Below, in pieces: positions 3,681 to 56,670 of a stretch of DNA of 64,000 nucleotides (within the stretch, counting starts at the first letter, position 1; each line of letters begins with the position of its first letter). The notes beneath the pieces are model-generated. The model did not search any database and was not told where the DNA came from. It was given only the letters and a program-made list of their open reading frames with translations. This DNA is from Paraphysomonas bandaiensis (lineage: Eukaryota; Protista; Chrysophyceae): NCBI GenBank assembly GCA_965644295.1, contig CBFFRP010000309.1:1-64000 (forward strand), read 5' to 3'. A program made the translations under genes and the position numbers.

Positions 3681-5115
3681 ATGATATTCACAGTGTTCAT
3701 TCTTTTCATCACAGGGATCTTCTCTCGAACAATCGACTTCGAAGAGATCGGAGGTGTGCCTAATGATGACTCTATTGAGACTGTATGGAGTAATGGCGCA
3801 TTAATCAACACCACTCTCAACTCACTTTTACCTGGCGATACACTCATATTCCCTTCAAAGACCTTCTATGTCATGGGTGGGATTAAGGCGAATGGGATCT
3901 CTGATGTCACTCTACAGTTTGATGGTGTTATCATATTCTCTAATGTTAGTATTGTTATATAACTCATATAGTTATATATATAATGTGATATATGTATTCA
4001 GAATACAGAACAATGGCCAAAAAATGAGGATGGTGATGTGTTTGAGTGTATCTACATGAATAATATTTCAAATGTGAAGTTCACCTCGTCCAAAACAGGG
4101 ATACTGGACGGAAACGGCAGGTGCGTGATGCTCTGAGTGTTTTCTATGTGATGATGACTTTTAACAGGAAGTGGTGGGGACTACCGGGTATCGGATACCT
4201 TCGCCGCGTCGAGAACAGACCTCGATTATTTAATGTCGAAAACTCGAAGAACCTCCTTGTGGAAAATATCCTTTTCAAGGACAGTCCGTACTGGACATTC
4301 TGGGTGCACTCTGTTGATGGACTTGAGGTGCGCCACTGTGAAATATCGGCCCGACGCACGGATTACAACAATCATACACTGATTGATATGACTGCTTTCA
4401 ACACAGATGGTTTTGATGTGACTGGTAGAAATGTATGGATTCATGACTGCGAGGTTTGGACTCAAGATGACTGCATTGCTGTCAAGGATGACTCCCAGGA
4501 TATGCTGTTCGAGAGGATTACTGCTAGCGGCGTTGGCCTGACTATTGGTTCCATTGGATCTTCTACTGTACGGAATATAACATTCCGGGATTGTTACATG
4601 CCCAACTCCTACAAGGTGTGTGTGGACTATGTGTATATGCTTGTGGGGTTATGATGTGGGTGCAGGGTATCTACATGAAGTTCAGGGATGGGGATGGAGG
4701 TCTCATTGAGGATGTAACTTTTGAAAATATTCTTATCGAGAACCCGAGCCAGTGGCCTATATGGATCGGCCCTGCGCAACAGTCAGATAGTCGTCGGCTA
4801 TGCGCAGCACATCCTTGTAGCTTATGTTGGCCTACTCTCCCCTCTGCTGAGTGTAACGCACCCACCTCCCAATACCGCAATATCCTTCTTAAGAATATCA
4901 CTATCTCCAACCCTAAGATGTCTCCTGGTGTTATTTTGGGAAATACTTCGACCCCCATGGAGGACGTTGTGTTTGATTCTGTGCAAGTAATTAATCCTGG
5001 CATGGAACCTTGGGGTGAGGACTATTATGCGTGTGATGGAGTCGCTAGTGGGGTCGCCAAAGGTTCTACCTGGCCAGTACCACCCTGCTTTAAGGATGAA
5101 ACTGATACTGCATAA
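3681..5115 (+). CDS. Secreted glycoside hydrolase family 28 (polygalacturonase-like), 4 exons
   Basis: Hydrophobic N-terminus MIFTVFILFITGIFS. Introns 3945-4001, 4121-4167 and 4616-4665 give a continuous frame with LDGNGRKWW, RPRL, SPYWT, NTDGFD, QDDCIAVK, GLTIGS and GIYMK. Confidence 0.9.
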
Positions 5116-17404: not shown

Positions 17405-20400
17405 ATGAATATAAGAAAAAATTCTTTAACACTTGAAGCATCATTACCAAGGAATTGGCCACACTCATCATCAGCAGATCTTGCAGATAATCCTAATCGA
17501 ATTGTTGTAGTGGGAGGCCCACAGAGATACTCATTTAAAAGTAATTTTGTAAAAACATCCAAATATGAAGTATGGAATTTTCTTCCAAAATTTTTAATGG
17601 AAGAATTTAATCCAAAAACAAAAGTAGCAAATTGTTACTTTTTATTAGTTTCTGCTTTGCAATGCATACCGCAGATATCGAATACATTTGGATATCCCAC
17701 CACACTACTTCCCTTGATTGTTGTCGTTCTTGTTGATGCAATTTTTGCAATTATTGAAGATTATGGGCGACATAAGGCGGATACGGAGGCTAATGCGTCC
17801 TTGGCATTAGTGTACGATCCAGACGAGTTAGATTTCGTGGAAATGAAATGGGCAGATATATGTGTCGGAGACTTTGTGCAAATCAAATCTCGAGAAAAAA
17901 TTCCAGCGGACGTGGTTATCCTGGGTGTTGCAGAAAAAGCAAAAATTCCCACTGGTTTGTGCTATGTGGAAACAAAGTCTCTCGACGGCGAGACTAACTT
18001 GAAGATTCGGAATGCTATGCCCAACACTATGGCCACGGTTAGTCAATCTATCCTATATACATTTCATTAGGTTGCAGTAATTGTTACCATATATGTACTT
18101 TTAGGTAAATGGCACAGCAGCCCTCAACAATCTCTCTGGTGAGATTACGATGGAGCACCCAAATAAACTCATCGACACTTTTAACGGTGTCCTGGGGATT
18201 GATGGGATGGGTCGCGAAGCAATAATGTCCAACCATGTGCTCTTGCGAGGATGTGTACTCCGAAATACCGACTGGGTTATTGGTGTTGTAGTCAACAGTG
18301 GTCATGACACAAAGATAATGATGAGTGCAACAGCTACGCCGTCGAAGACCTCTTTCCTGGAACACTCTGCCTCGAGTGAGATACAGAAAATAATTTTTCT
18401 GCTTGCGTTTGTGTGTTTCGTGGGTTCTACAGGGGCAGCCATATGGAACGATAAACGGAATGTCGAGCGAATGTGGTACCTGGATTGGGACCCCAACTCT
18501 GGAGAGTATTGGGTTATCCAGTTCTTCTACTTTTTTCTCCTTCATGCAACGTTTATTCCTGTCTCTTTGTATGTGTCTATGACATTAATTCGTTTCTTTC
18601 AATCGTATTTCATGAACAATGACCTTGAGATGTACTATGAAAAAACAGACACTCCGTCTGTGGTCCGCACAATGACGCTCAATGAAGAGCTCGGTCAGAT
18701 TTCCCATGTCTTTTCTGACAAGACAGGTACACTTACTTGCAACGTGATGGACTTCAGGAAAGCCTCGATCAATGGCGTGTCATACGGGCTTGGTATCACG
18801 GAAATCGGAAAGGCATCTTGGAAACTCCAAGGAAAATTGATTCCTAGTGACATTTTGATGGGAGAAGAAAATGCCAAGAAGGCTTCAGTTCCACATGTAT
18901 CCTTCTACGACCCGCAGTATGACGAAGATATGGCGCGAGGGGGGGCTCAAAGGAAAGCTAATCAACAATTTTTCCGTATCCTGTCTCTTTGTCACGACAC
19001 TATTCCGGAGCGTATCGACGGCAATATCAAGCTATCTGCTTCCAACCCAGATGATGAGGCCCTACTTTGCGCCGCTACTTACTTTGGATTTGAGTTCCGT
19101 GACAGGCGTATCAAGACTGCTCTGGTATATAACCGGGAACTGGATAAGGTGGAGGAGATTGACGTATTGGATACTATTGCTTTTACATCTAAGAGGAAGC
19201 GTATGTCCGTAATAGTCAAATACGAAGACGGGTCTATTCAGCTGCTATGTAAAGGTGCAGATAGCACTATGATTCCCCGGCTGCGTGCCGGTCAAGATGA
19301 GCTGTTAGCTGCGACGGACGATCATATGCGGCTATATGCGGTTGAGGGTCTTCGTTGCTTGCTAGTCGGTTACAAAAACTTAGACCCGAGAGAATATGAA
19401 AAGTTCAGTGCCCATTACAATGAGGTATCGACCAATATGGATGAACTAGAGAAGCGAAAAGCAGGTCTACCGAACCTAATTGAAGATGCTGAAGATGAGA
19501 TGGAGCAAGGACTGACCCTCGTTGGCTGCACTGCTATTGAGGACAAACTCCAAGATGGAGTTCCCGAGGCGATTGCTCAGATTGCGAAGGCTGGCATAAA
19601 CATTTGGGTATTGACAGGTGATAAGGAGGAGACAGCCATAAATATTGCTGTGGCGTGCAATTTAGTGCTCCCAAGGCAGTACATGAGACATGTAATTGTA
19701 AACAAGAAGACCTGTCCGAATACTGAAAAAATGAGGGAGTTGCTGGAGGCTGAAACCCAGGTCTAATAGTTATAAGTAGTAATATACTTAAGCCTTACCT
19801 TTTTGCGTAGTTGTGTGAAGAAGACATGAGAACACATGGCCATGGACAACTATCTCTTCCTCGTGCCCTGATTATCGATGGGCCCTCCCTCATTGGCGTC
19901 ATGCTCGATGACGAAGCAAAAGCGACTCTTCTCGATTTTAGTAGAATGTGCAAAGCTGTTGTTGGATGCAGGTATGTATATGAAGCACGCACATTAGTTC
20001 ATGATGTTTTCACTGACATATGCAGAGTTTCACCTGACCAAAAGAGGGAAATGGTAAATATGATAAAGACAGGTGTCGAAGGGGTGCGTACCCTGTCCAT
20101 CGGCGATGGAGCCAATGATGTTGCTATGATTCAAGAGGCCCACATTGGTGTAGGAATACGAGGCGAGGAGGGTATACAGGCAACCAACGCGTCGGACTAT
20201 GCTATTGCCCAATTCCGTTACCTGTCAGTACTGCTGTTGAAGCACGGAAGATACAACTACATCCGCATGTGCGCGCTCGTATGCTACATGTTCTACAAAA
20301 ATATCTTCATGAGTATATGTCAGTTTTGGTTCGCGTGGTTGAATGGATTTTCAGGTGAATGAAATGCGAGGGAGGCTGTAGAAAGAAATAACGTGTACAA

Positions 20401-21405
20401 TTATACCTTCAGGGCAAAAGATTTACACAGAGGCCGGTATTCAGATGTACAACCTTTTATTTACGTCGATACCTATTTTACTTAGCGGAATATATGATAT
20501 GGATGTTCCTCCTGGTGCTGTGTATAGATACCCTGAGCTGTATGCTGCTTGTATTGACAATGAGTACTTTACGGTAAGTCAGTCTGTATACTTTCTCATG
20601 ATTGACATGGTTCGCTTCTTAACAGCCTTGGGTGTTTTGGGGCTGGATCATGCATGCTGTCGGGGAGTCCCTCATATGCGCCTTTCTCCCGCCGTTGTTT
20701 CTACAGAACTCAAACCCACGGTCTGGTGCCTATGAGACATTCTGGGAAAGTGGAGCAATGACATTTACCGTTGTGGTTGTTATCGTCAATCTGAAGGTGC
20801 TTACACACAACCCTTTCTAACCAACTCAGTGCATGTTATCTTGTATACAGATGATATTCATTCAAACCAAATGGATGTTTGTAAATGTTGTGTTTATCGT
20901 TGCTTCTGTGGCCTCCTGGTTTGGAATTGCCTATCTAGTAACGAATGTAGAACTAGTGGACTATGAATGGTATCAGGTGACTCTTCTTTCTGCTCGCTAC
21001 ATGCTTGTTTTGACAATCTGGTCTGAGCAGATATGGGGAAGACTGATGTATAATGGCAATTTTTGGCTGGGATCTCTGATAATAGTGTTCGTTGTTATTG
21101 GGAAGGACCTCTACCTATGCGGACTACAGAGAAACTTTGATCCTAACTCCCCCCAAATAATACAAGAGGTGTGTTATATTCTTGTTTTTTTATAGTCACT
21201 TTTTATATATGCTTTTTGGATATAGATATCTCTTTTGAAGCCAGGAGCCAATTCTATTGATGTAGGAGACTCGAATGGTCTTGAACTCCCGTTGGCTCCA
21301 CAGAGGGAGGTGAGTAGTGGGACATCTTTAAGCTGGTGAGTGACCACATAAATGTTGTTATCCATATAGGAAAGCGACGGCTCGCAGGAGCGGCTTGTGC
21401 ATTAA
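17405..21405 (+). CDS. P4-type ATPase (phospholipid flippase)
   Basis: NFVKTSKY, ETKSLDGETNLK, LLRGCVLRNT, IPVSLYVS, phosphorylation motif DKTGTLT, PDDEAL, FTSKRKRMS, KGADS, EDKLQDGVP, WVLTGDK, IGDGANDVAMIQ, FYKN; multi-exon, stop at 21403-21405. Confidence 0.97.
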
Positions 21406-22730: not shown

Positions 22731-24687
22731 TTACCCTAGCACAATGGTGGCAGCACCTCCCTGGGCCCTGCGCCCAGTTCTGGCAGGGGCAGTGACCGGA
22801 CGAGCACACACAGGCTCCGTAGTATTATCCGTAGATCCCTTGAGATCGATAGATTGGATATCCGATATACCCTGCACATAATGTATGCGGAAGCAATTAA
22901 AAAGTGATTGTTGTTGCGAAGTAAAAAAGTACACACATTCCAATAGTACCTGCTCAACAAGGCGAGCAATCATGGCGGCCTTGTCGTCCGCTGCAATTCC
23001 AAGGTCATTCTTAATCTCCTCTACAGTCTGCCTGCCGTCGGTGTGTGTAACAAGCACACGTCTGCAGGTAGTGTTCTGACACCATCCCTCGCCACCGCTA
23101 ATGTGCCAGGCATTGCGAATCATGAGCTCAAAGTAGTCGTCCTCGTCAATAGAAGCAGACAGGTTGCTGTAGTACTTGCAGAACTCCGCAACTGTAACCT
23201 ATAGGATATAAGCACACATAACAACACACGCCTTCATATATGACAACATGTCCTAAGTTTAATAATAGAAAAGCTCAACGGGTACGTCATATAGAAGCCT
23301 ACCTTGCCATCTTTCTCGGTGCCGTCAAAGGTGTCGAGAAACTCACTGATTCGACGAATCACCATCAAAAGAATTGGTTATTATGCTTCAATTTACCTGA
23401 GAATTTCTGCAGACGTGCGCTTACCCGAAATCACATCCGGGTGTTTGCTCGCATCATACTTAGCGCTGATGTCGTTTAGCTCGACAGCACCAGACTTGTC
23501 AGCATCCAGAATCTTTGAAGCGAAATTACAGGAGTTTTATGTGCAAATGTAAACTGGGTACCATACCTCGAAAGCCATCATTACAAGCTGTGTGCGGCGG
23601 TCATTGAGTTCCCCGCGAACTCCGACAAGGAACTCATCAAATGAAATGCTTCCTGACTTGTCCGAATCAAAGTGATCGAACAGAATTTTAACCTGTTCTG
23701 GGGTCCAAGTTAGAGTGTGTTCCTTGACCGCCTTCGTAAACTCAGAAAGAGATATGGACTTGCTGTTATCATCATCCATAATGCGGAATTTACGTTGAAG
23801 ACCGAAGATACCAGATGCTCCACGAGCCTGAAGTCATGAGTAGTTACGAATACAGAGATCAAGCGCCATAGTAAAATGCACACAGTATGACACACCTTTA
23901 ACGTTTCTCTAAATTTATCCAAAAGGACCTCATAATCTGAAACATCCTCGGCTGGTGGGGCGGGAGGAAGCGGTACTACCGATTTCGTCTTTCCAAAGTT
24001 TTCATCCGCCGACAAATTAAGCATGCCGAGCATGGCACTAGCCCATGTATCGCTTAGGTTAGGAATAACACCTTTGGCTTCGAGGAGGCTGTCTTGGCAC
24101 ACAACACAAGGGAGAACAGGTTTGGAGGCCTGGATTCCAACCTGATACACAGCAGCCATAAGAACGGCACTGGTAGAACCTGCTCCGACACCGATATGAT
24201 CATTGACAACAACATCGAGGGCGAGGACTCCATCACATGAGGTGAGCATCTTCTGAGTCGCACAGGGTAGCATACTGGCATATGGGACTTCAGATACAAA
24301 CACATTCACAATCCCAACTTTCGATAAAGCTTTCGTAGTAACAGAAGCAATAGTATCAGAACCAGGACCTTTTACCACCACTAATCCAACATTATGTTCC
24401 GTGATCTCAACAGGAGTGGGTGCAACCATCACAACTAATACACATAACAATCAGTATATATATATATATAAATATATCCACTACAACGTAACCAAATAGT
24501 TCCGTTGAAAGTTGATAAAAGAATGAATGTTGTTACCTTCTTCTACACCATTCTCTTCCACTACTACTGGCTGTGGGGCAATTTTCTCCTCCCATGCAAC
24601 AGAGAATGAACTCTTTCCACCTGGGGGAGCATGTCTTCTTGTAGAAGATCGACCAACATGAATATCAGAACTTGTTTTTGTTGACAT
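22731..24687 (-). CDS. Calcyphosin-like EF-hand protein with N-terminal PPGG motif and lumazine-synthase-like domain (7 exons)
   Basis: Spliced: ARGASGIFGLQRKFRIMDDDNSKSISLSEF, FDSDKSGSISFDEF, ILDADKSGAVELND, YDASKHPDVISGKRT, EFLDTFD, YYSNLSASIDEDDYFELMIRNAW (calcyphosin signatures). Introns 24536-24435, 23895-23828 and 23566-23513 keep frame. Confidence 0.9.
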
Positions 24688-25539: not shown

Positions 25540-28500
25540 ATGAAGAAAACATCAATCAACAGACAGTCATCAGAAGATCATGAGAAGAAGAGCCTCATAT
25601 ATAAACATACGGATCATATGGGACATAAGCGTCGATGGCTATCACAGTTACAACCAAAATTGATATACTCTGAAGAACAAAGTTTAGATAGAGCAAATAC
25701 TGGAGGGCCTGTTGACAGTTTGTCAGGAACTGATGACTTTTTTAGCAGTAGCGAATTCTCGAATGACACTCTGCAGATATTGTCGTCGTCATCTCAATCA
25801 CCACATTCATCTTTTAGGTATTGAAATCATATGAAGGATTGTTTCTAGATTTACGTTGCACTTTAGTAGGAGAAAATTCACTTTGTCGTGCTCCAGCTCA
25901 TTTTCGGGAAACGACTGCGAGGAAGATGTCCAAGACTGGCTTATGGAAGATTCCAATGTAGTTAGCGTTATATTTGGAGCCTTATAATTGTTTATTTCTT
26001 AGGGAAGAGGGTTGTATTCACTGTCGTCGCATACGACAGATGGTGGATCAAGTGTTCTTCAGCGGTCTAATAGTTCCAGCGTAGACAAGGAAGAGGGATA
26101 TGAAATACTCTCTCAATTGCGAGAAATGTCTGACCTCCAGTTCGATACATTAGAGTCTGCTGATCAACTCGAACTCGCGCAGTCTATAGAGGTAAAAACC
26201 CTGTATCCTGGAGACATCGTGGTTCATGAGGGAGACGATAATGATGGCGGATGCTTTTTCCTAATTCTTGGTCCTGAAAACGCACAAGTTGAGGTCGTGC
26301 GCACGGTCAATGGTATGTGTATCCCTCTAACGACTTTCGAAAGATCATCCGTGAATATAGGGTCCGAAGAATTTTTAACTCGACTTGGACGAGGCCAGTA
26401 TTTTGGACAAAAATATTTCATGTCGAACCGAGTGGTGAGATTACTCTCTACAACTGTTTGATTTATGTGGGTGAATTTGATTTTCCAGGTGCGGCGTAAT
26501 GCCTCAGTCCGAGTTGTAACTGAGACAATCCTTGGTTGCGTTGCACCGGAACACTTTTATTTATGGCACAAATTTCGAGCCTTCCTTCTTATGAAGGCTG
26601 TGCCGCTGATCCGTACTCTCCCACAGAGCGACCAGCTGGAGATGTATTCCCTTTTGCAACACCAGGAATTCCAAGACGGGGATTATATTATTCGACAAGG
26701 AGATGTTGGAGATAAATTTTACATTATCATCGAGGGAGCGGCAGATATCATTGAGGAATCCTGGGACGGAATCAAAATGCGGTGCGATGTGCTCACTCGC
26801 CTCTATGAGGGTCACTTCTTTGGGGAAATGGCCATCATATACGACGAACCGAGGTATTGTACCAAACCTGGAGTTTTCTGTTCTTAAAACTGTGTGCGTA
26901 GAGTTGCGAGTGTAGTAGCTGTAGGGAGAACGGCGTGTCTTTACTTATCGAAAGCGGCATTCCGAGATGCATTAACGACTCAGCAATTCCATAACATGAT
27001 GCAGGTGTTTTTCTTTTACTATATCTTCGGATATTATTGTAATGTCGTGTTATGTTAAGAACGTGGCATACGAAAGGACTCTTGTCAGAGAGCGACGTGA
27101 AAAAACATACAATGCTAAGATGCTGAACCTCGAGTATTCGTCGACCTCAAACAGCATGAGCAATGACTTGGGTGACGTAACTTCCCCGCCAAAGTAAGAA
27201 CATACGTTTTAATAACCAGCTTCTAATTTTTGGAAAACAGAAACTTTACTACCAGATCGTAAGTATACAATGAAAAATACGTTTGCACTTAAACTTTACG
27301 AATGTGTAGGCGCCGATTAAGTGACAGTCCTGCATCTTATTCATCTCGCCGGTGAGTCTTGTTGTGCCGTCGAACACGCTAAATCATCCATTATTATTGT
27401 TAGCATCTCCGACCGCTCCGACATCAGCGATACCAGTGATTCTCAGACAGTGGTGACTACTACTAGTGTTCTTGTACGCAAGCAGCTCTCCACTGGCGAT
27501 CGGTAAAGCGCAGCTTATAATTTCGTTAATAGTTTCATATAATGTACAGTTTTATCAACAAATACCTCGTGTTGCGCGAACTTGGTCGTGGGTCATTCGG
27601 TGGGGTTTATCTCTGTCGACATGAGGAAACAGATAAACTCTACGCAATGAAAATGGTCTCAAAGTGAGTTGCCTTAATTCCTTTTTATATTGTTAATCAG
27701 ATATCAGGTCAGCACATAAGTGGAACATGCACTTAACGAATGAGATTAAAAAAGAGATTGCTATTATGAAAAATTTGCGCCACCCAAATGTTGTTAGCCT
27801 ATTAGAAGTCATTGATGACCCGTCGGCTAAGCAAGTATACTTGATACAGGTGAGATTGCTGATTAAAACTAATAAATTAAAATATGGGAAATGCGACAGG
27901 AGTATATGGAAGGTGGCCCTTTGCTTCCAGGAGAGCAGGTTGTGAGTGACCCATTACCACCGGAGAAGGTGTGGCTTTACTTCAGAGATATGCTACGTGG
28001 GGTCAGCTACTTACATTCCCAGGTTGATTTTGTTTTTCTGTGTTTCTTCATTTATAATGATACTCGCATAGGGGGTTGTTCATAGAGATCTGAAGCCTCA
28101 GAATATGTTACGATCTGCAGATGATAAGGTGAAATTTTAAACTGATATTTTTGGATAAGGGAGTTGAACAAGCTGTACATTGTAGATTGTAAAAATAGCC
28201 GATTTTGGGGCTGCTGTATTGACCAGCGGTGGTGCCAAGTTGGCTGCTGGTGGAACACCCGCATTCATGGCTCCAGAGCTTTTCAAAGTGGGCCTTTCGG
28301 GTGGGAAGAATAATAACGCGAACTCACCATTGGTAAGTTGTTTCTTTTGTGTTGATATATATTCAATTCACCACTCTGCAGGTTGATGTATGGGGACTTG
28401 GTGCAACGCTTTATAACATGGTGTTTGGGAGACCACCATGGATAGCCCAAAATCAAATCCAGTTAGCGGAAATGGTTCAGAATATAGAGCTTAGATTTCC

Positions 28501-31500
28501 GGAAGATCAAGAGTTCGATATTGATCCCCATTTGAGAAATCTGTTAAAACGCATGCTTGAGAAGGATCCAAAAACACGAATAACCATGGTAACTGTTCGT
28601 GTAAGAAGAAATATGTGTTATGAATGCTGTTAGGCGGAAGTGCAATGGCATGAGTGGGTGACGATCGAAGGTACCCAGCCGATTGATGACGAAGACATTG
28701 ATGTTGCAACGTATGATGCACGAGATCGAGTATCCGAAGTGCTTATTCACGAGGCGATTCCGGAATACATAGGTTCATAATCAGTAACGTTTTTTCTTCG
28801 TGGGTAAGCTTTTTCAGGTGCGGTTCCTATAAGACGTCTGTCGGGGCCTTATGCCACAGTTGGGGACCTCGATATTTGTAGAGGCATCATTAGCCCAGGG
28901 TCTAAAGTAATGACACTAATATTTAAAATATCATGCTGAAAGTTTTTCTATACAGGCTGCACGAGTCAAGAATACCAGTGGTGTTGTATTTGATGCATTG
29001 GTATTATTGATATATGAGCAACAGTGCTACTGCTGATATTTTTTTCCTGCTGTCTTGATTGTAGAACGACAGTGCCGACGTGGACGAAACTTCACCAAGC
29101 TGGCGATCATTAAGAAATGCTGGCAGCCCCTTCTTCCTGGTTAGCCTCGTCATTATATGTCGCGAATTTCTGTAATTGATTCGTACAATGTAGCCTTCAA
29201 GCGATAGTCACAGACGAAGCACAGATTCGTCTATTACCTCGTCCTCCACGATTTGTTCAAGATCGGGATCCCCGGCCTCACGCAGTGCTGTTCTGGACGC
29301 TTTGGATCACGAAAGCGATGATGGTGAAAATGAATGTTTATCGTAAGTCGTGCTATGTGTTGCGACGATTATAGCTTTCTCATTGACCTGCAGAGAAAAC
29401 TCTAAGCGGTTATCTTATACTAAACATCAAGAATTTGTTGCTCGTCCAACTGAAATGGTACTCCCTGAATCTGGAGAAGTCTGGAAAGGAGTCATTATTA
29501 CCAACGCCAAGAATCGTAACGATAACATGTTGAGTGGTTTTAATTGGACGTCTCAAAATGTGAAATCGGATAAGCGGAAGGCTTTCAGAAGGTTTGCTGA
29601 AAAACGTTTTATGAGATTGATATATGACGATGGGTTGAATAGGTTTAATACTTACTCTTACTCTTCAGATGCTAATGATTCGGATAACGACGACAGGTAA
29701 GTACCATGACGGTATGTTTTTAATGTGATAACATTTATATCATAGTCGATCATTGAGAGACTGGAAAGCTCGGTCTATGGATAAGCAATTATCGCGAGGA
29801 AGTAGTGATAGTAACGCAGAGTCTGATGCATCGGACAGATCCAGGAAGAGCAAAAGCACGTCCAATGTGGTAAGAGGTCTAATAGGGCATGCCAATGCTT
29901 CACAGTTCTGATATAGAAAGTTTCAATCCTTCCGACATCCTCACAAAGGAATCCTCAGTTGTCTGTTCAAGTCTCCACGCCCTTATCAGAACAGAAATTG
30001 AAAAAAGATATGAACTCTGCATCAGAAGAAGACTCTGACTCAGATGAGGAGCAATTGCTTGAGGTTGTTGTTAGGGGGCAATCATGTAAATATTCTCCAA
30101 CCGGCTCGACTACACGATATACAACTAACTCAAAACAACTATCTGAGCTCTGCGATTATGTATCTGATGATGAGGTTGGAACCTTTGGAATGTTACGAAA
30201 TGAATATCTCTTTATACTTAATGGTAGATTATTGAGCTTGATAACGACGGCCTGGATGATATGCTTGACTCTCTGTGTCAACCTACTCAATCTATGCATC
30301 GTGATGTCCAAATGCTTCCGCTTACACTTGACAGAAGAGGACAGGACTCGTTGTTTTACATAAAGACATGGGCAGGACAATCCAATCTCCGCGTAGGAGT
30401 CCGGTATGTTGTTGTTTTTACTTTCTTTTGAAATTCATACTTCTTGCAGATACGGTGTCGCTGAAATTATTAATGGGCGGGATGATATGGAAGACCGTAC
30501 AACTGCGAAAGCGAGTATTGAAGAAGAAGCGAGTAGGCAGAAAGTGCGGGTGCTCAGTGGTGCTGCACCAAATTCTTCCTTTAATATGGATGTATGTATA
30601 CTGTCGAGTTTCTGTGAGTTAATATGTGTGCTTTATGTTTAGTATCTTGAGAAGGGACATACTGAAGACTTTGCGTTCTTTGGTATATATGATGGTCACG
30701 AAGGGTCTTACGTATCAGAGTATTTGCAACAAAACCTTCACATTCGCTTTCGACAGCGTCTTGCAGTAAATGGACCAATTAGGAACAGCGCGGTTTTGAG
30801 CTTCATGGAAGCTTGCTCCCTCATTGACGACGAAGTCCTCTCGGCTGATTTCGAGAGAATGAGGGTTGCCAAGGAAGCCAGAGCATCGATGTCGATTAAT
30901 AGAGATGCCTTACAAGTGAATGATAGTAATCAAACACAACTCCCACCCCCCCTATCAGAACGTAGTCGAGAAGAACGAGTAATGATTTCCATTAATCAGT
31001 TCGTGTTTTAATTGTGCTCTGTAGCTTTCATCGTTAGTATGCACTAGTCCAGGGGGAACGAAGACTGCAAAGAAAATGCTGAGCTCTTTGGTGCGAGAGA
31101 GTGGAATGCAGAGCTTTGCAGGTGTGCGTATGGTGTATAGTATTGTACTACTTGTGTTTGTTGAACCACTGACCAGGAAGCACTGCAATTGTCGCCATAC
31201 TTTTCGGTGGTTGGCCATATGAAATGCCAACGAACTCGAAACAAAGTAGTCCTAGGAGCTCTAATACGCCATCGTCATCTGTGTCTCCTCCTAGACGTTT
31301 GTCCACTAAATCTAGTAGGAGTACGCTCACGAGTATGAGCTCTTCGACCCACTCTCTTATTCACGGTGACACTGTCATGCCTTCTCAGGCAGAGCATGAT
31401 TCTGCTAAAGAAAACACAACTGGTATTATTTTGCATTTTCTATCAATTTACTCAATAGTTTACAGATGGTACTGAAGAGAGAAATATAGAAACTCTGCCA

Positions 31501-54944: not shown

Positions 54945-56670
54945 TAGGGCTAACCATAAGTAATAACCATAAGTAGCTTTTTTTTCGTTTTTTTGTCCCC
55001 TCTCATAGGATAAGTACGGGATTTTGTTGTACCAACTGCAAAAACCTGTAACTGTTAAAACATCTCAACACTTGTGACACTTACATCTACACTGCTGATC
55101 AGTCAATTCAATATAAAATTAAAGTGCAGGTAATTGACATTAATTGCCACTTGCTGACAACTAACAATGGTTTCAGGAGCAACTCAAAAGCGCGCGAAAG
55201 GGACCAAAAGGAAGCGCACGAAAAAAGCTGCTGCCGACGCCTGTAAGCTTAGAGAGAGAAGACAATGGCGTTTGATTAATTTCGACAAAGAGTCATTCAA
55301 GCGGCCTCATGCTATACGCGAGAAACGCCATCTGTGTTTTAATGTGCGAAAAGGGGGTCAAAGGGCATCCCTTTTGGAGATTTTCTTGAAGTTTCTCCCT
55401 CCTGCCTTTGTCACGAAGATTGCATCGGAAATTCCTAAACATGAACTCAGATACTTCAATGGATGGACACTGCGGTTGTCTTTGAAAAAGATATATTGCA
55501 TATTGGCCATTAAGATTCGAATTTATGGTGAGCAGTGTGTACCTGTTAGTGTCAAAGCACGGACCCGTCCTTTGCGTCTTCAAATCAAGGCGTTCAAGAA
55601 ATATTTTGAGGAGAAATACCTCGTCAAGACGTTCGGAATCGTTGGTTGTGAACTTGTTTTGTCTCATTTTCTGGTTGATAGCACGTATCTGGAAGAGTTG
55701 TCAGCTAATTTTATGAGTATTGTCAGGCATATTGGTACCTATGTTGCAGGGGACGAAAAGTTGCTTCGCTTTTTTGGTGAAAGTGATAATGTTCGTGTGG
55801 TTTTTAGCAAGCCTGATAGAGTGGGGCTGTGGTTCTATCAGCTAGCATCAATTTTGTCCAATGGTTTGTCCTACTTGTTGCATTTATGCCTACATGATGT
55901 TAGTAAATTAGACGAAGGGTCATTTCCGGTTTCTCAAGTGGTACAAATGTGGTGTCGACATGTACTAGATGGTCCTTATGTGGACAAAGACGTCGATACC
56001 TTGCTTGTCTTTGACTCGTTTTACCATTCTAGCTCAACTAGGGAATTCTTGAATCGACAAAACGTTAAGTACATTGGAGCCGTCCACCCTAATCGATTCA
56101 AGCTTCAAACGGATATGCTTAAGAAGAAGATACGCAAGGTGGGGGACTTTGCTGGCGTTTACAACAAGACTACGGGCGAGATAATTGTTCAGTACTATGC
56201 AAAGCCACAGCATGGCCAAAAAGATGCTAAGATTAGGACTGCTATGAGCAATGCATACACACGATATGGTCGACGAGGTACTCATCACCATCGCCCTGCT
56301 ATTGATGCGTACAAAAAGAAGTTTGGTGTATGCGATTTGTTTAACCGACAGATCAAATACCGCATATGGCCGCACAAGCATGGGGGTAAAGGTGTTAAGG
56401 GTGAAAGGGGTAAGCAGGATTCCTTTGCGTTTGGCTGCATTTTGCAAAATACATTTAATGCCTATCGTGATATCAATGATGTAGCTAGTGAAGAATATGA
56501 TTATCATAGCTTCTGTATGCAGCTAGCTGATCAAGTATATATGTACGCACTAGAACAGAGTACTGCTACTATATAACATAGCTTTGCAAGACAACTACTT
56601 GATTGAATATAATAATGATACGATTAGTTTTTTGAGATCTACTCGTGGTTATCACTTGTGGTTAACCCTA
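54945..56670 (+). mobile_element. 1,726-bp piggyBac-like DNA transposon with 32-bp imperfect TIRs
   Basis: Left TAGGGCTAACCATAAGTAATAACCATAAGTAG (54945-54976) vs reverse complement of right TAGGGTTAACCACAAGTGATAACCACGAGTAG (56639-56670), 27/32 identical; removal restores the DOCK frame. Confidence 0.85.
55167..56576 (+). CDS. piggyBac-family DDD transposase, intronless, 469 aa
   Basis: GDEKLLRFFG..SKPDRVGL (D1), LVFDSFYHS (D2), GAVHPNR, PAIDAYKKKFGVCDLFNRQ (D3); basic NLS-like N-terminus; no C-terminal Cys-rich domain. Confidence 0.88.
   Translation: MVSGATQKRAKGTKRKRTKKAAADACKLRERRQWRLINFDKESFKRPHAIREKRHLCFNVRKGGQRASLLEIFLKFLPPAFVTKIASEIPKHELRYFNGWTLRLSLKKIYCILAIKIRIYGEQCVPVSVKARTRPLRLQIKAFKKYFEEKYLVKTFGIVGCELVLSHFLVDSTYLEELSANFMSIVRHIGTYVAGDEKLLRFFGESDNVRVVFSKPDRVGLWFYQLASILSNGLSYLLHLCLHDVSKLDEGSFPVSQVVQMWCRHVLDGPYVDKDVDTLLVFDSFYHSSSTREFLNRQNVKYIGAVHPNRFKLQTDMLKKKIRKVGDFAGVYNKTTGEIIVQYYAKPQHGQKDAKIRTAMSNAYTRYGRRGTHHHRPAIDAYKKKFGVCDLFNRQIKYRIWPHKHGGKGVKGERGKQDSFAFGCILQNTFNAYRDINDVASEEYDYHSFCMQLADQVYMYALEQSTATI

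Follow-up and report, generated by a model that had tools for sequence, protein, structure and literature searches.

The analyzed stretch of Paraphysomonas bandaiensis DNA (64 kb, hereinafter the window) contains a seven-exon gene on the minus strand (24687-22731, no internal stop) that encodes a 499 aa protein in which a catalytically dead domain of the lumazine synthase (LS) fold is joined to a calcyphosin module, an additional conserved domain and glycine-rich motifs at both ends. Most likely, this protein is not a lumazine synthase but works like a calcyphosin-type microtubule inner protein. That it is microtubule-associated and catalytically dead can be held with considerable confidence; the complete reading, under which it would be a non-enzymatic, cytosolic or flagellar, probably Ca2+-binding and likely luminal microtubule protein oligomerized by the dead LS domain, is given a probability of about 0.55.

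The gene was dissected exon by exon, using profile and sequence searches along with structure predictions; all features of the gene given below are on the minus strand, and all six introns have GT-AG boundaries. Exon 1 (24537-24687, with the start codon at 24687) matches residues 1-53 of a transcript-derived protein of Paraphysomonas vestita and is followed by an AT-rich, 102 nt phase 1 intron (24435-24536). Exon 2 (23896-24434), delineated by Pfam, AlphaFold (AF2) and mapping to the P. vestita protein, encodes the LS-like domain (exon-2 residues 11-142; 24007-24402), a poorly conserved Pro-rich linker of about 25 aa (23935-24006; 23-57 aa in the aligned homologs) and the helix with which the calcyphosin module begins at its N-terminus (23896-23934; helix 167-178 of the model, with the conserved pattern L-x-x-F/L-R-x-S-L-K). 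In general, the linkers of this family vary in both length and sequence. Intron 2 (23828-23895, phase 0, 68 nt) occupies the identical position in two related genomic loci. An earlier note, made from the sequence alone, had placed these first two introns exactly; its claim that exon 2 is spliced in frame to both neighbors stands as well, but the exon itself is longer than the approximate span of 24396-24015 proposed there. The remaining exons encode EF-hands 1 and 2 (exon 3, 23567-23827, identified with the Pfam EF-hand models), EF-hand 3 (exon 4, 23397-23512, supported by mapping to P. vestita and the loop ligands), the loop of EF-hand 4, atypical as it is in calcyphosins (exon 5, 23303-23345; 14 of 14 residues the same as in P. 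vestita), the last part of the calcyphosin module together with the beginning of the additional domain, which is absent from Pfam (exon 6, 22950-23198), and the end of this domain, a variable tail, the C-terminal motif and the stop codon (exon 7, 22731-22871, which also maps to the P. vestita protein).

The gene is convergent with a plus-strand P-type ATPase gene (17405-21365) that looks like a P4 flippase, and the divergent neighbor on its other side (26012-28633, plus strand) consists of exons for a cNMP-binding domain followed by Ser/Thr kinase exons. By eye, the latter look CaMKK-like, and the whole locus possibly encodes a single cyclic-nucleotide-regulated kinase. Elsewhere in the window are a GH28 polygalacturonase-like gene (4121-5115, plus strand), an intronless ORF for a DDE_Tnp_1_7 (piggyBac-like) transposase (55167-56576, plus strand) and a perfect 294 nt inverted repeat with an 82 nt spacer (924-1593), which is either a foldback element or an assembly artifact. 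No conserved gene neighborhood was found among the loci related to the fusion gene.

The closest full-length homolog is the 502 aa transcript protein of P. vestita, along which the seven exons align contiguously and in gene order, with 58, 84 and 90% identity for exons 2, 3 and 6, respectively. Because this transcript spans all seven exons without interruption, a close relative demonstrably possesses the fusion, and the joining of exon 2 to the EF-hand exons, on which the earlier proposal depended, is observed in a transcript of that relative. Single-ORF fusions were further identified in Mallomonas marina, Mallomonas annulata (two paralogs), Chlorochromonas danica, many transcript-sized contigs and two intronless genomic loci. 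It is therefore very improbable that the architecture results from a wrong gene model joining two adjacent genes or from a decaying pseudogene fragment. Such an error might be suspected because gene callers of the prokaryotic type break related loci apart at this second intron; however, contiguous fusion ORFs are present in the MMETSP/EukProt transcript sets of four named species in addition to the intronless loci, and dN is well under dS (see below). Moreover, the first calcyphosin helix is encoded in exon 2, so that the LS domain and the beginning of the calcyphosin module lie together with no intron in between; in the single-ORF homologs, this helix runs on into the part that corresponds to exon 3.

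Altogether, 61 fusion sequences were counted, some of them near-identical, so that the search of other proteomes proposed in the earlier note yielded about 60 cases. All cultured species named among the carriers belong to the Chrysophyceae, and most members are environmental sequences; the fusion is thus likely, though short of proof, to be confined to chrysophytes. The members labeled "Symbiodinium" and "archaeon" look like contaminants or mis-binned sequences. The former (L017: GCA_905231925.1, CAE7608885.1) lies on a 2.6-kb contig and is labeled "CAPSL [Symbiodinium microadriaticum]"; its product is 76-85% identical to exons 1, 3 and 6 of the window gene, with which it shares intron 2 (it is one of the two loci mentioned above), and it probably represents a Paraphysomonas-like contaminant of the Symbiodinium assembly. 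The latter (P0058, EON65_24245, listed by NCBI as "archaeon") clusters with the protein of Chlorochromonas in the phylogenetic tree and thus is probably a mis-binned chrysophyte sequence. In the databases, family members are mostly missed or mislabeled, as "EF-hand protein", "CAPSL" and, once, lumazine synthase; consequently, false calls of the riboflavin pathway are possible in chrysophyte genomes.

Three proteins of 261-277 aa combine the LS domain with the C-terminal GG motif and have no calcyphosin module: P0023 of M. annulata, which thus possesses this form along with its two fusion paralogs, P0068 (locus L014) and P0036 (L012:6001-6834), one of the three being a stand-alone gene on a genomic contig. 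In the phylogenetic tree (126 columns, with many forks unresolved), the presence of calcyphosin requires at least two changes, and the short forms are best read as independent losses with at least two origins. The existence and repeated emergence of such forms indicate that the LS domain and both protein ends are kept as a unit of their own.

The assignment of exon 2 to the LS fold, first made in the earlier note along with a call for Pfam, PDB and Foldseek comparisons, is supported by all of these approaches. Exon 2 matches the Pfam family DMRL_synthase (PF00885) with 28.1 bits (E = 2e-6), above the gathering cut-off of 26.7; against the TIGR00114 equivalog model, it scores 15.9 bits, far under the cut-off of 84.6. 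A phmmer search of PDB with exon 2 alone yielded no significant match (best E = 0.7). Against 1.84 billion representative sequences, the same query retrieved 79 proteins with 25-58% identity, none of them a canonical RibH (one of the 79, P0062, is a low-complexity false match). The profile of the resulting family (81 rows) retrieves lumazine synthases from PDB with E = 3e-8 and aligns with E. coli RibE at E-values of 2e-6 to 2e-10; PF00885 is matched by 55 of the 81 members. The AlphaFold model of exon 2 has a pLDDT of 31 when predicted from the single sequence and 93 with the 81-sequence alignment, and with this latter model as the Foldseek query, all 50 of the top matches listed are lumazine synthases or engineered cages derived from these. 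The TM-score to solved lumazine synthases is at most 0.77 on the target, with an rmsd of about 3 Å and 14-23% identity. Taken together, the sequence profiles and the predicted structure show that the exon-2 domain carries the LS fold.

With respect to the origin of the domain, the profile search ranks mycobacterial lumazine synthases first and Foldseek ranks fungal ones first, by small margins in both cases; resemblances to the fungal enzymes, namely a VGL motif and a Trp residue, are suggestive only. There is no sign of a viral origin in the viral fold library, where the only two LS-fold matches, with 16-17% identity, are giant-virus proteins; these (BFVD A0A1V0SE20 and A0A2I2L4Y7, from Indivirus and Orpheovirus) contain LS-fold domains within long fusion proteins. 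No relatives of the LS domain were found in metagenome contigs, and the sole match to a bacterial genome contig (L019) was dismissed as a chance similarity that contains stops and lies opposite a TRAP-transporter gene. An intact RibH is absent from the window.

The residues F22, H88 and R127 have been cited as catalytically important in lumazine synthase (PMC12871164). When the active-site columns of the 81-row alignment are read against E. coli RibE, the position of the stacking aromatic (F22/W27) is a gap in 79 of the 81 sequences, with no conserved aromatic nearby, the ribityl-binding Glu is replaced by aliphatic residues, the RGxTxH loop is short and variable, Pro takes the place of F113 in 74 of the 81, and Leu, Val, Met or Ile that of R127. 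Furthermore, none of the 123 domains available for the motif count contains any of the three RibH motifs, RGxTxH with His88, QAxxR or PG[AS]-aromatic-E. The apparent absence of F22, H88 and R127 that the earlier note reported for one sequence is thus a property of the entire family. Within the H88 loop of the window protein there is indeed a His (exon-2 residue 79); this residue is shared by fewer than 7 of the 81 members, and its equation with the catalytic His, which comes from a pairwise alignment 4 residues off register, was rejected. The family has near-invariant residues of its own (exon-2 P108, E118 and W130), a conserved motif, S-L-L-E-A-K, in place of the TxEQA-x-x-R segment and, in the AF2 model, a single helix into which the last two helices are merged, and it retains the hydrophobic pattern of the channel-lining helix. 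The LS-like domain evolves under purifying selection (dN of 0.15-0.49, with dS ranging from 1.65 to saturation) and is a maintained pseudoenzyme rather than debris; the transcript ORFs and the column analysis together bear out the notion of a catalytically degenerate RibH fold genuinely fused to calcyphosin.

A divergent enzyme that is still active, either as a lumazine synthase or in a new reaction around the conserved Pro, Glu and Trp, would be compatible with the passing of the Pfam gathering score and the near-invariance of E118 and W130. This possibility appears remote, however, given that F22, H88 and R127 are all missing and that the strongly conserved polar residues of the family are limited to Glu, Lys, Ser and Gln, all located in helices. 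In addition, plastid targeting is absent, although riboflavin synthesis in ochrophytes is described as plastidic; the N-terminus of the fusion protein is of low hydropathy and has no hydrophobic signal peptide.

The same losses bear on the suggestion, also made in the earlier note, that the domain binds flavin or lumazine and could form a hub linking a flagellar flavin photoreceptor to Ca2+ signaling. Riboflavin is bound by some fungal lumazine synthases (1kyv), and a flavin-fluorescent posterior flagellum occurs in phototactic heterokonts including chrysophytes (PMC2781859). Nevertheless, flavin binding is unlikely because the ligand pocket is gone, with F22 (deleted in 79 of the 81 sequences), the GA-aromatic-E motif that includes the ribityl-binding Glu, H88, F113 and R127 all lost, and because the nearest relative, from the heterotrophic genus Paraphysomonas, is colorless. 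The proposed connection to flagellar autofluorescence fares no better: brown algae, the group in which this fluorescence has been studied most thoroughly, are not represented among the named members, and the posterior flagella of these algae have yielded a purified flavoprotein of the Old Yellow Enzyme type, that is, of a different fold (PMC2781859). Overall, a flavin-linked hub is considered improbable.

The pseudoenzyme domain is followed by a module homologous to CAPS/CAPSL, which consists of the N-terminal helix, an RG-x-x-G-I-x-G-L motif and four EF-hands. The best PDB match of exon 3 is CAPSL (11yj, E = 6e-21), with RIB57 and RIB22, doublet proteins of Tetrahymena, ranking next; a match to the NCBIfam XopAW model, far under the cut-off, reflects generic EF-hand similarity. 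Among the 32 near-full-length members, the Ca2+ ligands (D1, D3 and the acidic residue 12) are conserved in loops 1-3, with loop 4 atypical, and judging by these ligands, the module probably binds Ca2+. CAPSL itself is a microtubule inner protein of the transition zone that binds luminal alpha-tubulin 1:1 and stabilizes microtubules (bioRxiv 10.64898/2026.06.11.731632). The very conserved domain of approximately 65 aa that follows the module (22840-23102), for which there is no Pfam model, accompanies every calcyphosin unit of many protist proteins and matches DMIP21. The best PDB matches of exon 6 are DMIP21 (9e78, E = 4e-21) and 9e2g_0T (E = 3e-16), the DMIPs being doublet microtubule inner proteins of trypanosomatids (PMC7617938).

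The third microtubule-related part consists of the protein ends. Exon 1 encodes a Jupiter/SPIRAL1-type motif, R-x-S-T-R-x-H-A-P-P-G-G-K-S-S-F-S-V (24598-24651, delineated with the homolog alignment), with an exact PPGGK-x-S signature that occurs only once in the six-frame translation of the window. Exon 1 of the window gene does not match the Pfam JUPITER model (PF17054), and 4 of 22 homologs do (best E = 6.6e-4). In luminal JPT2, PPGGK-x-S is needed for microtubule binding, and both serines are required (PMC12773733). Nearly all of the 22 homologs have Ser or Thr at both of these positions, where the window protein has both serines, and the lysine relevant in JPT2 is found in only about a fifth of the homologs. 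At the other end, the degenerate motif R-R-x-x-G-G-x-S/A-S/T-I-x-F/L-G, immediately followed by the stop codon (22734-22772), contains QGG in the window protein and PGG in several homologs. The profiles of the C- and N-terminal motifs are similar (E = 9e-6 over 12 columns), so that the paired PPGG motifs of the original description are exact at the N-terminus, but at the C-terminus are degenerate and related at the profile level. The profile of the N-terminal motif also weakly matches the C-terminal tail of CRMP5 (PDB 4b90, E = 0.09), a dihydropyrimidinase-related protein and hence another enzyme-fold microtubule protein.

The microtubule role advanced in the earlier note is thus supported by three parts of the protein, the calcyphosin module, the exon-6 domain and the PPGG motif, and the case is better than could be known at the time because the closest relatives of the first two are microtubule inner proteins. 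By analogy, the fusion protein would reside on the lumen side of stable microtubules, be they those of flagellar doublets, the transition zone or flagellar roots, throughout the chrysophytes: two of the three microtubule-binding parts have luminal homologs. On the other hand, calcyphosin-like modules are also found in proteins of unknown location. The calcyphosin module would dock on luminal alpha-tubulin in the manner of CAPSL, and the GG motifs at either end, carried by flexible arms, could bind tubulin as does PPGGK-x-S of JPT2. The dead LS domain would be kept as a self-association core, such that several tubulin-binding arms per particle brace or cross-link the lattice with high avidity, and Ca2+ bound to the EF-hands may modulate this bracing; the calcyphosin-less forms would then represent the hub minus its Ca2+ module.

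Lumazine synthases of known structure form pentamers or capsids built from pentamers (PMC12871164), and the odds that the LS-like domain oligomerizes are somewhat better than even. Among the possible assemblies, a pentamer is predicted to be the likeliest; a capsid is less likely because the loop between the last two helices is remodeled and both termini carry long extensions. In protein engineering, lumazine synthase is in wide use as a scaffold. The pentamer interface itself may differ from that of the enzymes given the replacement of the TxEQA-x-x-R segment and the merging of the last two helices in the model, and a lumen of roughly 15 nm would leave little room for a pentamer of about 270 kDa that bears five calcyphosin arms. 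The fully specified version, a pentameric, Ca2+-tunable luminal hub that presents five CAPSL-like modules and ten Jupiter-type peptides to the inner wall, can accordingly be offered only tentatively.

The same remodeling of the last helices, the new family-specific motif and the identity of only 14-23% to solved lumazine synthases speak for the alternative that the LS-like domain is a monomeric or dimeric spacer, or a partner-binding domain, within a microtubule-associated Ca2+ sensor and has lost pentamer assembly. Nor does the terminal motif alone fix the binding face because SPR1 uses similar motifs for plus-end tracking and not in the lumen: its terminal GGG/PGGG domains suffice for this activity, and its PGGG motif is dispensable (10.1101/521047), so that the fusion protein could be located at the outer surface or the plus end. 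However, the channel-lining helix keeps its hydrophobic pattern, and the luminal homologs of the two parts point to the lumen. Besides, we know of no natural monomeric lumazine synthase. A spacer or an outer-surface location therefore seems unlikely, if far from negligible, and a luminal microtubule protein oligomerized by the dead LS domain is the preferred reading.

No description of the LS-calcyphosin architecture was found in the literature searched outside subscription journals, in agreement with the earlier impression that it is undescribed; lumazine synthase also is unmentioned in the chrysophyte literature searched, including a 2026 genomic survey of chrysophytes, and no conserved dead LS serving as a structural domain of a eukaryotic cytoskeletal protein was found in this literature either. 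If the proposed role holds, the family would offer a clear-cut example of pseudoenzyme co-option along with a named candidate for the luminal particles or lineage-specific microtubule inner proteins of chrysophytes, abundant aquatic grazers for which, to our knowledge, there is no molecular inventory of flagellar or root microtubules.

Reuse of enzyme folds as microtubule inner proteins has a precedent in the thioredoxin-like proteins of Toxoplasma, and each part of the fusion protein has known counterparts. With RibH/RibE/Rib4 (PF00885, TIGR00114), it shares the alpha/beta fold (profile E = 3e-8), but F22, GA-aromatic-E, RGxTxH, F113 and R127 are lost, the last two helices are remodeled, and the LS fold, far under the equivalog cut-off, is embedded in a cytoskeletal-type protein of 450-675 aa. 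The N-terminal helix and four EF-hands are common to CAPSL/calcyphosin (11yj, 3e3r) and the ciliate proteins RIB22, RIB35 and RIB57; however, CAPSL is a stand-alone protein of 208 aa whereas the module analyzed here is fused to the LS fold, the extra domain and the GG motifs. DMIP21, DMIP23, DMIP20 and 9e2g_0T all have a counterpart of the end of the calcyphosin module, and DMIP21 and 9e2g_0T have one of the extra domain as well, but the trypanosomatid chains show no LS-fold match and belong to a different lineage. Paired terminal (P)PGG-x-S-S-hydrophobic motifs on flexible arms are typical of Jupiter/HN1/JPT2 and SPIRAL1, which, however, are small and disordered, unlike the three folded domains that the motifs enclose in the chrysophyte protein. 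Finally, the multi-calcyphosin proteins of protists such as Triparma and Dinobryon (540-800 aa) contain the same unit of calcyphosin and extra domain, usually in at least two copies, in contrast to the single unit of the fusion family, and have neither the LS domain nor the N-terminal PPGG (0 of 99 proteins). Each of the parts thus is already known, and the new element is the dead LS core.
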